A DNA stretch of 64,000 nt from Eukaryota sp. TZLM1-RC (taxonomy: Eukaryota; Protista; Metamonada: BaSk clade), in the NCBI GenBank assembly GCA_040285825.1, contig JAUPSS010000002.1, positions 248,001 to 312,000 of the forward strand, given 5' to 3'. Below the pieces are notes generated by a model. The model ran no database searches and was not told where the DNA came from. It was given only the letters and a program-made list of their open reading frames with translations. A program made the translations under genes and the position numbers. Of the stretch, positions 13,761 to 55,857 are shown piece after piece (position 1 is the stretch's first letter; every line of letters begins with the position of its first letter).

Positions 13761-14874
13761 TGTTGTAGTTACTGATAAATAATGTTAGTAGTTATCTCAG
13801 GATTTCACTTGATGACGTGGCACTCGTTGAAGAACGGGTTTCTTTATTAATAAACGTTCTTTTCTCTCTCCTTACTTCTTTGGTATTTCTGCCTAACGGC
13901 ATCAATAATTATTGGCCCTCACTGCAGATGCTTTCTACCCGCGTAGTACTCCCTCTCTTGATTCCATGAAAGTGGATGATGTGCTCTTGTTTTTACAGGA
14001 GTGGAAGGTGTACTCTTCTGTTACACCGAAGAAGGACCTTGTTCCAGCAAGGCTCCCCGTGGACCCCTTCTTGTTGGAATCATTAATTCTCACAAGACCT
14101 GGGGGTCGATTCGTCCGATGAGGTGTTTCTGGATTATCTTAGATCCTCCACTTCATTTTCCTTGTACGAGGAATTCAACTTGGCGATGGCTGAGTTGAAG
14201 GTTGATGTCCGTAAGGGCGACGTTCGTGAACGTATGTCCTGCTACCTGAGACGTTTCCTTCAGGCGAAAAGCAGGGCTTCCGGACTGAAATTGCCTGACT
14301 CAGCCTTCATGCTCCGATTCGCCAAGGGGATTCTTCCAATAGGATAACAGAAATCACTGATTTCTCGCATTAGGGACGAGGTATTCCCCGACTTTTCTAC
14401 ATTGGTAAGTACTGCAGAAGATGAACTCCTTGATTGCTCTCGAGTAACCTCTTGGAACAGACCTTTAAAGACTTTTCATGAAACTACTGACTTTCTGCGC
14501 CAAGCTGGAATGAAATCTCGGTCATCCAACACATCCCGCAATCTGGCTGAAGGAACCTGCTTCAAGTGCCATCAGAAGGGCCATTTGTCTCGCGATTGTC
14601 CCTCTAAAGTAAAGCACGGATTGAATCATCTCCGTGTCTGCAACGACCCACCCCAGAATTTGTCGAATCCCCTCTCCTCATTGTGTTAAGTTATTTTTGA
14701 AACTGTTGAAAGGAAAATGGGAAGAAGTAGTGTTATAGTTACTGATAAATAATGTTAGTAGTTATCTCAGGATTTCACTTGATGACGTGGCACTCGTTGA
14801 AGAACGGGCTTCTTTATTAATAATCGTTCTTTTCTCTCTCCTTACTTCTTTGGTATTTCTGCCTAACGGCATCA
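13761..14874 (+). mobile_element. Gag-only non-autonomous LTR element (LTR family 1), 1114 bp
   Basis: 144-bp LTRs 13761..13904 and 14731..14874 (TG..CA, 3 differences), TSD TAAG, PPT GGGAAGAAGTAG; gag-like frame from ATG 13928 with knuckle CFKCHQKGHLSRDC and one internal TAA; no pol. Confidence 0.93.
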
Positions 14875-49569: not shown

Positions 49570-52097
49570 ATGTTCGTTATTCCACTACTGCTTTTAACTG
49601 TTCTAGCATCGTGTGCTGATCCGCTCATCCATTACACTGTAGGCACTGAAATTCATTACGATCTCCATTCCAATATTGATGTACGCCCAGTTGATAACTC
49701 TAAGCTCTACAAAGGTAGTACTGGTCGCCTCAACAGTTGGGCTGCCATAAGGTGCACCGATATTCAGGGTGATGGTCCTAATAGGAAGTATCTTTTCTTG
49801 ATGAACTGCTTTGATACAAAAGTTGGCACAGGAGAGACGAATGATGATGTTCCCCTTGTCCTTCCCTTCCCTGAATCCGCCTTTGGATCTCTGCTCGGTA
49901 GCTCTGCTCTTGGCAAAGATATGACGTTTCAAATGTCCGCAGCTGGTGAAGTTGAAAAGATATGGGCCTATACCAAAGATGGTAAGTTTCTACTCTGCTT
50001 TCTCTCACTTTAGATGATAGACTCATTCGCATCAGAATTGGTGTCATCAACTCTTTTGCCACCAGCGTCACCGCTGCTGGTTCTCAGAAACGTGTTCTCG
50101 AGCACGATCCAGTTGGTGTCCATTACTCTGCTGTTGCTGGCAAAAGTTCCTCATCCAATCTCCGTGTCCGTAAGACGTTTGGTACCCCTGATTTCAAACA
50201 ATTTGCTGATGAGCGAGTTCAACCTCATATGGTATCTTTCAATGGTGTTGGCGAGGTTGAAATCTCTGCTGAGGGTCATTTTGTTTCTACTCACGTGGAA
50301 CACGATCTCAGAGTACTCCGTCCTGCCAATGGTGATGACCTTTCAGTTGCTTTCAAATCACTTGGTTCTCTCAACATGGGACTCCTCAAAGGACCAATGA
50401 TGGTTAACAAACCAAGCCGTATTCATACGTTTGAAGGCATGTTTCAGCTTGAAAATGAAGGAAATATGACCTCTGATAACATGTTTGACTTCTCTAAGCG
50501 CCTCTTGTTTGCTGATGTCATTCATCCTGCTTCTATTTCACCCCATGATGTTCCTTCTATTCTCTCCTACTCTGCTAACCGAATGCTTGCTGATGATCAA
50601 AATCCTTTAATCCGAACTGTTGGCCTTTTACATGATATTGATACCTCCATCGAATCATCTGAACTAGTGAAGGCTGTAACTAAGACTGTTCACGCAGCTG
50701 CTAATGAAAAGGTTTATGATGTTGCTAAGCTTGGTCTTTATGTACTTTCTGCAGCAATGACGAGGGAATCTAGTGATGAATTAGCAATGTTTATCATGAC
50801 AGACCTTGAAGAAGTAAAACTTGAAGCCATTAAGGTAGCCACTAATTGTCGCTCCCCTACCCTTGATCTTGTTCAAGCTTTGATGTCTCAGTTGGAGTCT
50901 GATGATGAAGAAGTTCGTGTCTCATCTCTATTGGCGCTTGGTTCACTTGCCAAGAAGGTTGATATCCAGTCTCAAGAAGCTATTGTACGTAAGATTGAGT
51001 CAATTTCTTCTAATCCTGATTGGGAAATGAAACATATTGTTGCAGCCATTGGTAATGCCGGAGAGTCATTCCCTCTTGATCTAGCTGTTTCTCTCATCAA
51101 GGAAGCCATCACGCATGAGAATAGTGAAACCCGTGCTCAAGCAGTCAATGCTCTCCGCAAACGTTCTGTTCAGCATTCCAACAATCAGAATGTTGTTGCA
51201 CCCATCATTGTTGCTGGACTTCGTGATGTTTCTGAACATGTCAGAGCTAGTGCTGCCAAGATTGCTTCTCGTCTAGGTTTTGGAAATGGTGTTAAGTTTG
51301 TCAACTCTTTGATGCCCTATAATGTCTCTTGGTCCAAGGATATTGAACTCGGTGGTTCGACAGCTGGTCTCCAGGCAGGATTTGAATTATTTGGTGGCAG
51401 CAACTTTGACTGTAATCACCCAACTTTCAACTATGAAGCTCTAGCTAGAGGTGAGGTCACTGTTACTTTGTTTGATTCTTCTCATTCTGCAGCTTTGGCT
51501 GAAGTTGTTTATGGTAAAATCAATATGCAGCCACTTTCTGACAGAATCTTGGTGACCATTTGGGACGAAACCATTTACTCAAAGCCTCTTCAAGCTTATG
51601 ATTGTAAGGAACATGTCAAGCAAATTTTCCATACTGCGCCTGGTGTTTCCTATTCTTGGGTCTTTTTCATTTCTGTTATTCCTCTTGAAGTAAAGGTCTC
51701 TGCCTCATTAATTTTTAATGTCGAATGGGCTTGGGCTGTTTGCGATGGTGATTTGAGTGCTGTTGTCGACATTAGACCAAATGCTGTTGTCATGCTTTCA
51801 GGTTCTGCTCAGATCAATCTACTTATTGTTAGTGCTGGTGTGGAAATCAATGGAAATTTACATTCTAGAATTGTACCTGCAGCATATGTCAAAGGTTCCC
51901 TTTGTACGGTTGGCTTAAAGGCTACTCATATCATGAACCCTGTCAATGTTGATATTAACGCCTTTTTCAGAGTGTACAAGTGTAAATTCTGGTTCTTCAA
52001 TTGTAAGCTTCGCAATAAGAATGTTTATAATGTGTTCCATTGGGGTCTTCCCTCTCATGAACAAGTTCTCTTTGACAAGAACTATAAAATTGCTTAG
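49570..52097 (+). CDS. Secreted large-lipid-transfer (vitellogenin-N/MTP)-like protein; exons 49570-49981, 50014-52097
   Basis: Signal peptide; intron 49982..50013 (GTAAGT..CTCACTTTAG) joins the ORFs in frame; beta-rich N-terminus, helical repeats (LLALGSL, AAIGNAG, RAQAVNALR), beta-rich Cys-containing C-terminus. Gene model firm, product less so. Confidence 0.7.
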
Positions 52098-52861: not shown

Positions 52862-54741
52862 CTAAAGTGACAATTTACCCAAAAACTCTTGACAAAGACC
52901 CTTAAATCGCCAGGTATCACCAGATATTCGACTAAAAGTAACCACATAAAGTGCATCAAACCCAAAAAGCTGCTTGACCTCTACTTCAAACTTAACATGT
53001 CCCTTGACACAATCGAGTTTGTAATTACCAACAACTTCAAACAATATTGCCAAATCACTGGCTACCTGTTTGATAATGGTTATAATTGTAGAAGGATCCT
53101 TAGAGCTTGTCGAATTGACATTAAATGCCCCCTTGTGAACCCTCAGATGAGATCCCTCTGTTGGAAGAGAGGGCTGAGGGCCAGGACTAGATACTAGATA
53201 AGTAGAATCAACAGCAATAGAGGCTCGGCGATTCCTGAATTCTGGCGAGTTTTGATCTGATGTTGATCGTTGATGTCGGGAAAAGCTCTCTTGAATTGGA
53301 GGAATTGGGAGTGTTGTTGCAAAATTACCATTATGAACGGTAGCATCTCTATTGACATCAACATGAGGGGCGAGAGAGTGACGCCTGGCTGCTTTATCAG
53401 GAGTATACTGACGATCCTTCTTTTGCTTTGAGGTAGCCTCACGAACATTAGATTTCCGATAACTTTCAATATAAGCTGATTCTTCATGTTCTGATTCTTT
53501 CAATTGATCACTATCAGCATCAGCGATGGATGCTACTGTATCATCTTCAGGAATGACATCAAGAACTGGTGTTCTCGAAGCCACAGATCCAGACCTGACA
53601 GATCGTCTCCGCCGTTCCTTATGACGAACAGGAGTTTCAAGAGAAGAAGTGACAGGAGCAACAACGCTTGATACTTTACTTGGGTTTTTCAACTTTTTGT
53701 CAAGTAATAAGTGATAGGTAGCTGTAACAGAATTGTGCTTCCCCTTGTTCAGTGATGTTAATGCGTACTGACGATCAAACCCTAGTGATTCTAACTGGAC
53801 AATAACATCTTCGTTAATTACCTTGTTGTTTCCTTGGTAGAGACCTTCACTTGACTCAGGATCTTGATAGTACTTATTATACCAATGATTTCTTCTTATA
53901 TCCTCAATAGTAAACCTCTTGTGGGGATCAACGGTGAGAATCCCTCGTAACAAAGAGCTAGCATCGGCAGACACGAATGAAGGAATTGTAAACTTCCCAC
54001 TTAATATCTTGCTATAGAGAGCAGGAGTGGAAGGGTCTTCAAAAGGAAGGAATCCGCAGATCAGAGCGTAAAGGATTACCCCCATGGACCATACATCAAC
54101 ACTAGGTCCTTCGTAACGATGTCCAGCGATCATTTCTGGGGCGGCGTAACATCTGGGGTGAAGAAGCTAAGCTAAAAACGTACGCTAGAGTTAGATGAAG
54201 AAATTGATAACAAACGTGAACCACATGCAGTTTTCAAGAGCTTGTCCTGCCTAACTGTATTAGAAAGTCCAAAATCAATGACTCTTATGTTTTTCTTTGC
54301 ATCAAGAAGTAGATTTTCAGGTTTGAGATCTCTGTGAATGATTTTGTGACGGTGACAATAATCTACACCATTGACTAGTTGATGGAAGAATTTACAAGCC
54401 TCTTTCTCTTTAATTCTAGTATGTGCAACAATATAGTCAAAAAGTTCACCACCTGATGCATACTCCATTACAAGATAAAGATGACGAGGAGAGTCTATGA
54501 CTTCAAGAAGTCTAATAAGATTGGGATGATCAAGAAGGCGTAAGATACGGATTTCGCGTGTAATACGCTCTATGTCGGCATGATCTTGGATCTTGCTTTT
54601 TTCGAGGACTTTCATTGCTACCTTGGAATTGGTGGGAATGTGAATAGCACGTCGCACAGTACCAAAAGTACCTTCCCCAATGACAGATCCCAGTGTGTAA
54701 TTACCAACCCTTTTGACACGAGAGTTTTCAGAGCTTCGCAT
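52862..54741 (-). CDS. SNF1/AMPK-family Ser/Thr kinase (kinase, UBA, KA1-like); exons 54741-54216, 54184, 54152-52862
   Basis: GEGTFG, VAMK, HRDLKPEN, DFG, TACGS[P]CYAAPE, DVWSMG; UBA-like ATYHLL; C-terminal FSRISGD. Confidence 0.95.
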
Positions 54742-54808
54742 TGGGAACAAGACAAGACAAAAAAGGTAACAAGATTTGATTTAATTAAAAAATGAATTTA
54801 TTTCTGAA

Positions 54809-55183: not shown

Positions 55184-55786
55184 CTACATCATTACACAAC
55201 ATCTATCGTGCTTCTTTGCCCTTTTATAAAACATTCTAGTTGACATTGATAAATCAGCTGAATCCTCCACCAACTTGTCCAACTGCTCTCCCCGTTGTAA
55301 AAGTTTGTCAATAGAATCCAGTAACACATGTTTTGTATCTTCAATGGTACTCATAATTGCTGTACACTGGTCAGCCTTTGCTGGGTCTTGAAACCTACTC
55401 AAAAGACCTTTCAGAGGGGGAAAAGGTACTGAAAAGTCTGATGAAGAGGACATCCACGTTGACTTTGGCACGGCTGTTGAAAACACTTCCAGGACTTTAT
55501 AAGTGACTGCAAAAGCAGCACGAGACGGATAGGCTTGGTCAGCAACAACAACTGCTCCCAGGTTGTCACTACGTAGGTAAGCATAAACTACCCAGCGGTC
55601 TTCATGTACTGTGTATCTAGTGGCAGGCTTCATTCGTTTAACCACTTCACGTGCAGAAAATTTGATAGTATCAGCCGCACCACCACGAAACATTCGACCA
55701 AAAGAAGTTAAGTCTGATTCTGAAGAAAGAATTACTGGCGGAGATTCAACATTCTGTCTTACTAGAGAAATCGCCAAGAGAGGCAT
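55184..55786 (-). CDS. YKT6: Longin R-SNARE Ykt6
   Basis: DLTSFG, YPSRAAF, FQDP, LLQRGEQLDKLV, MFYKRAKK and terminal CCVMM prenylation motif. Confidence 0.93.
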   Translation of the reverse strand: MPLLAISLVRQNVESPPVILSSESDLTSFGRMFRGGAADTIKFSAREVVKRMKPATRYTVHEDRWVVYAYLRSDNLGAVVVADQAYPSRAAFAVTYKVLEVFSTAVPKSTWMSSSSDFSVPFPPLKGLLSRFQDPAKADQCTAIMSTIEDTKHVLLDSIDKLLQRGEQLDKLVEDSADLSMSTRMFYKRAKKHDRCCVMM

Positions 55787-55857
55787 TGAATAAAAGTGAA
55801 GAAGGCCTTTCAAAATTCAGAATTTATAAAGTTCGCATAAATCTCCTTTTCATCACC

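Follow-up and report, generated by a model that had tools for sequence, protein, structure and literature searches.

Exons of a single nucleotide have been proven by RT-PCR and RNA-seq in the plant genes APC11 (including that of Arabidopsis) and VPS55, where they occur land-plant-wide (Guo and Liu 2015, PMC4674806; Yu et al. 2022, PMC8831610). A further one-nucleotide exon, that of the Fusarium gene CYP621A, is conserved in approximately 20 orthologues and supported by SRA reads (PMC12940212). Conservation in orthologues is usual for the known one-nucleotide exons, but it is not essential to the definition. The candidate described here is situated in a kinase gene of strain TZLM1-RC (Eukaryota sp.), i.e., Skoliomonas litria, a free-living soda-lake metamonad (Williams et al. 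2024, PMC11316075), on contig JAUPSS010000002.1 of assembly GCA_040285825.1. The analysed stretch of 64,000 nt (positions 248,001 to 312,000 of the contig) is referred to as the window, and positions are those of the window unless a locus is named. One-base exons as such are already known from plants and Fusarium; the present case belongs to a metamonad, is flanked by far smaller introns, and lacks conservation.

As in APC11 and VPS55, the reading frame depends on a single base between two spliceosomal introns of the ordinary kind; this base was missed by genome annotation and read aligners, and it belongs to a codon that is continuous in intronless homologues. In contrast to the plant exons, the S. 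litria case is lineage-specific and predicted from sequence, the flanking introns measure 31 nt each and the whole structure 63 nt, and the sampled DNA of the organism contains only about one intron per 20-25 kb. In both Fusarium CYP621A and the S. litria gene, the base stands second in its codon, and this codon specifies a conserved residue of a motif (Gly of PKG in CYP621A, Pro of GSP here). The mode of detection is shared as well, namely an alignment of the exons on either side with an intronless relative, in which a single base is lacking. It differs from CYP621A in coming from a single species and from sequence alone.

Three further arrangements resemble the locus in part. Recursive splicing at zero-length exons uses a ratchet point of abutting AG|GT, at which nothing is retained. 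Two intron units placed head to tail and removed stepwise are common to both, but at the kinase locus the order is AG-C-GT, one base would be retained, and loss of this C shifts the frame, so that the locus falls outside this class. In fungal stwintrons, a splice signal of one intron is split by a second intron and removal occurs in sequence. Close contact of two introns and sequential removal would apply here as well, whereas the S. litria introns are both complete, lie side by side without overlap, and thus do not form a stwintron. Introns of Giardia and Trichomonas are few and short, with a fused branch-point/acceptor motif. Those of S. litria are likewise few and short, and their branch motif also keeps a constant, small distance to the 3' end, but they differ in the spacing of five bases after YTNAY, in the usual length of 31 nt, and in the AT ends annotated for some of them. 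A search of the literature for tandem or zero-length exons in metamonads returned nothing relevant.

The kinase gene is encoded on the minus strand. Exon 1 (54216..54741) starts with the ATG at 54741-54739 and comprises 175 codons plus the first base (C at 54216) of a split Pro codon, thus ending with GGT TCA C. It is followed by intron 1 (54185..54215, 31 nt, GTTTGTTATCAATTTCTTCATCTAACTCTAG) with the donor GTTTGT, the branch motif CTAAC at 54194-54190, and the acceptor TCTAG. Next to this intron lies the predicted one-nucleotide exon, a C at 54184 that would stand second in the Pro codon C-C-A, and then intron 2 (54153..54183, 31 nt, GTACGTTTTTAGCTTAGCTTCTTCACCCCAG) with the donor GTACGT, the branch motif TTCAC at 54162-54158, and the acceptor CCCAG. 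Exon 3 (52862..54152) provides the third base of the Pro codon, begins on the minus strand at 54152 with A TGT TAC GCC GCC CCA GAA (CYAAPE...), and extends over 429 codons to the stop codon at 52864-52862.

In case of removal of both 31-nt units, C, C, and A are joined to Pro and the peptide ...KTACGSPCYAAPEM results. If instead all 63 nt are removed and the C is skipped, the frame shifts and a TGA at 54130..54132 is reached, which is the end of the deposited 182-aa model. Full retention leads to an in-frame TAG at 54174-54172 within intron 2, which halts the read-through (ORF 54172..54750). The original prediction, made from the letters of the window, had proposed the restored Pro on removal of both introns, the frameshift on skipping of the C, and the TAG on full retention, and each of them was recovered, with the three segments (54215-54185, 54184, and 54183-54153) exact in the minus-strand letters. 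It had furthermore attributed to both 31-nt introns a branch motif of their own, which agrees with the pattern GTNNGT plus YTNAY-N3-AG of this genome.

The intron signals of S. litria were derived from deposited gene models, which were reconstructed by means of their coordinate ranges and the lengths of their products, considering introns that join long ORFs; the resulting consensus rests on only about four independent introns, detected in 106 kb (window and sampled loci L005 and L006). A 32-nt intron of the window (49982-50013) reads GTAAGT ... CTCAC TTTAG and a 31-nt intron of locus L006 reads GTTTGT ... CTTAT TCTAG, both of which join long ORFs. A 31-nt GT..AT intron (GTATGT ... CTAAT CACAT) is located inside the HRDLKxEN region of the paralogous kinases P0047 and P0060 (L005:10420-10450 and L006:10420-10450). 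Due to the fact that removal of the latter exactly reproduces the deposited P0047 and P0060 proteins, AT-ending introns belong to the public S. litria annotation. These introns share GTNNGT, measure 31-32 nt, and carry YTNAY followed by three bases and AG or AT, so that the branch motif is situated five bases ahead of the 3' end. Both kinase introns satisfy every one of these features. A 30-nt string (GTTAGT ... TTCAC TTGAT) that occurs four times in the window, at 13784-13813 and 14754-14783 on the plus strand and at 19115-19086 and 20085-20056 on the minus strand, fits the intron pattern by chance and joins no ORFs; it probably belongs to a repeat that is also present in inverted copies.

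A strict pattern taken from the other introns of the genome, GT[ACT]NGT ... YTNAY-N3-A[G/T] with 28-34 nt, was used to estimate how often such a tandem pair arises by chance. It matches 18 times singly in the window (both strands), and any two matches 0-3 nt apart were obtained, on either strand, in 4 of 1000 composition-preserving shuffles of the window, which places the kinase pair beyond chance. Moreover, the observed pair falls exactly at the junction of two conserved kinase-domain halves. No further tandem pairs with full signals were detected by the strict pattern in the window and two more S. litria loci. A looser tandem pattern had been discarded because chance pairs were as numerous as real ones, and the stricter pattern with shuffles was used in its place; generic ORF-joining intron screens of the window were also abandoned as too noisy in AT-rich DNA.

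Independent of the pattern counts, all frame-restoring, stop-free schemes near the site with one or two introns of GT..AG or GT..AT type were enumerated. Among the 21 schemes found, full 5' and 3' signals on every intron are present only in 54215-54185 plus 54183-54153, and only this two-intron scheme yields both the spacing of the orthologues and GSPCYAAPE. The translations of exon 1 and exon 3 were searched separately against Pfam, protein collections, and PDB. In the alignment with AMPK alpha-2 (2h6d), exon 1 covers residues 4-173 and residue 2 of exon 3 is aligned with residue 176; in this numbering exactly one residue, the Pro of GSPxYAAPE, is absent between the two exon translations. For S. 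litria, both exon searches of the protein collections returned only the two deposited genome models and no transcript-derived protein. The single base is surrounded by two complete introns, each with donor, branch site, and acceptor, and judged by the intronless homologues it is required for the frame as well as for a conserved residue. Taken together, we consider it quite probable that a one-base exon lies between two complete mini-introns and provides the second base of the Pro codon.

The translation of exon 1 (175 aa) is assigned to Pfam Pkinase with an E-value of 1.2e-53 over profile positions 1-160; it contains the N-lobe of the kinase up to and including DFG as well as KTACGS of the activation loop. 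Exon 3 (429 aa) continues with Pkinase positions 163-262, followed by a UBA domain (UBA_SIK3) and a C-terminal KA1 domain, and thus contains the C-lobe and both accessory domains. Pkinase, UBA, and C-terminal KA1 in combination with an activation loop T-x-C-G-S-P-x-Y-A-A-P-E correspond to the MARK / SnRK1 layout, and the Pro of this motif is present only given the predicted splice. The PDB matches to AMPK alpha, MARK, and SIK are nearly equal, their E-values differing by less than tenfold. Among the Pfam matches of the two exons, a C-terminal family specific to AMPK (adenylate-sensor / beta-binding) is absent. The gene, with a predicted joined product of 605 residues, is an AMPK-related (CAMKL) kinase, while an identity as AMPK alpha itself is not demonstrable. 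The AMPK label of the original prediction is consequently imprecise, since AMPK, MARK, and SIK are about equally close.

Judging from the substitution pattern, the kinase gene is under strong purifying selection. Exon 1 shows 87% identity to the orthologue of Skoliomonas sp. RCL, with a dN/dS of approximately 0.08 (95 codons; synonymous sites near saturation), and orthologues of exon 3 align across 99-100% of its length. In addition, neither the ORF of 175 codons nor that of 429 codons is interrupted, at a genomic GC content of 36%. Purifying selection together with the intactness of both ORFs argues that a productive mRNA must exist; from the letters we infer that it carries the predicted junction.

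Five homologues, namely those of Skoliomonas sp. GEMRC and Barthelona PCE, two S. litria paralogues, and at this spot also that of RCL, read GGN TCN CCN TGN TAT without interruption, and compared to them the window is longer by exactly 62 bases. The tandem structure is not conserved in the orthologues, as RCL has a different single intron and GEMRC and Barthelona PCE have no intron here; the predicted tandem pair is hence specific to the S. litria lineage. The RCL intron is a 30-nt GT..AT intron located 13 nt upstream (L001:3938-3967, GTTTGT ... CTAAC TTTAT), where it separates the codons for Thr and Ala in KTACGSP, and it splits the deposited RCL models into RCL1_001431 (182 aa) and RCL1_001750 (436 aa). 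Due to the similar distances among the three Skoliomonas proteins (47-50% identity in the C-terminal part), the order of the intron gains cannot be set. Descent of intron 1 and the RCL intron from one ancestral intron was considered, as 22 of 31 positions are alike by eye, but intron 1 shares 21 of 31 positions with the unrelated L006 intron, so that the likeness reflects the intron consensus and not shared descent. Similarly, introns 1 and 2 match by eye at 15 of 31 positions, about half of which are fixed signal positions, and there is thus no sign of a recent tandem duplication of one intron.

In the kinase domain of the GEMRC orthologue, two compensating one-base indels were observed (L002:3930-3933 and L002:4047-4048), a T-run of four compared to five in the relatives and an extra G in TTG-AAA, with a conserved stretch in shifted frame between them. 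Either an assembly error or early decay explains these indels.

The deposited annotation offers a reading in which a single 63-nt GT-AG intron is removed, a 182-residue product is made, and the C-terminal part either forms a gene of its own or is not made at all. GenBank model P9112_002185 (182 aa) cuts the 63 bases in this way and ends seven codons later, and a second model of 407 aa begins at the internal Met at 54085. In favour of these models, the pipeline used RNA-seq hints (PMC11316075). Yet read aligners miss a one-nucleotide exon and report one long intron unless the exon is given as a known junction, as was shown for plant APC11 (PMC8831610). Because standard aligners cannot place an exon of this size, a 63-nt intron hint would be expected whether the C is kept or not. 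The single 63-nt intron would moreover cut the kinase domain between DFG and APE, leaving two halves neither of which would be a working kinase although both are strongly conserved and intact, and the pairing of the outer signals would have to ignore a nearer branch site. The RCL orthologue, although split at the same spot, is so for another reason, namely its unpredicted GT..AT intron. We therefore regard the deposited structure as very improbable; on the evidence of the domain layout, GenBank splits what is one predicted kinase gene into models of 182 and 407 aa.

A single non-canonical intron could also restore the frame, and without a stop, in three ways: a 59-nt intron (54211-54153) with donor GTTATC and a normal acceptor, resulting in GSRLCYAAPE, a 65-nt GT..AT intron (54215-54151), resulting in GSRYAAPE, and a 62-nt option with non-GT/AG ends, resulting in GSRCYAAPE. 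The 65-nt option gains some plausibility from the GT..AT introns in the S. litria annotation and in RCL. All three options replace the conserved Pro, though, and are about twice the usual intron length, and those of 59 and 65 nt alter a spacing that is fixed in all homologues and AMPK alpha-2. Furthermore, the 59-nt option lacks GTNNGT, and in the 65-nt option no branch motif is found at the usual spacing from the 3' end, which leaves this group of explanations very improbable. Finally, the locus might be a recent pseudogene or contain an assembly error and have no productive splice. The two one-base indels in the GEMRC orthologue assembly indicate that indel errors occur among these nanopore-based genomes. 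Against this, a perfect product is obtained from the sequence as it stands so that no error is needed, the assembly has a coverage of 206x Illumina (PMC11316075), and both ORFs of 175 and 429 codons are open at 36% GC; we consider decay or error as extremely improbable.

Given the two-intron structure, each 31-nt unit would be recognised across the intron via its own donor and branch motif, independent of exon size. Since the acceptor of intron 1 and the donor region of intron 2 overlap, the two presumably could not be engaged simultaneously, and the introns would have to come out in succession. The resulting mRNA would be the same in both orders; removal of intron 1 first may be favoured by the order of transcription. 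Once both introns are out, the C would be retained and joined with the C of exon 1 and the A of exon 3 to CCA, the Pro of GSPxYAAPE. Pairing of the outer donor with the far branch site and acceptor would instead leave out the C, with a frameshifted and truncated protein as the result. The obligatory sequential splicing of the original prediction may reasonably be assumed on this basis, but its further suggestion of a control point for AMPK expression has found no support so far.

If RNA data confirm the junction, this would be, as far as we found, the first reported one-base exon outside plants and fungi and the most compact case, with two introns and an exon in 63 bases. It would also mean that there is no lower exon-size limit for a spliceosome that recognises tiny introns as units. 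For the annotation, the structure corrects two deposited gene models, of S. litria and of strain RCL, each of which halves a conserved kinase. Moreover, two introns that are one base apart in DNA with approximately one intron per 20-25 kb argue for two linked gains, and a linked gain of adjacent introns bears on the origin of new introns. It is tempting to speculate, albeit doubtful at present, that the one-base exon belongs to a series of tandem mini-introns spread over the whole S. litria genome, in which a new 31-nt intron tends to arise directly next to an existing one and the 3' cut is set by the distance to the branch point, the length of the exon being irrelevant. Were this the case, S. 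litria would represent a natural system for intron gain and pure intron-definition splicing.

The called genes around the kinase locus are mostly intronless. The upstream neighbour on the minus strand (55184-55813), annotated in the deposit as Longin and Synaptobrevin, encodes a longin-SNARE of the Ykt6 type with the end CCVMM, a prenylation-type tail.
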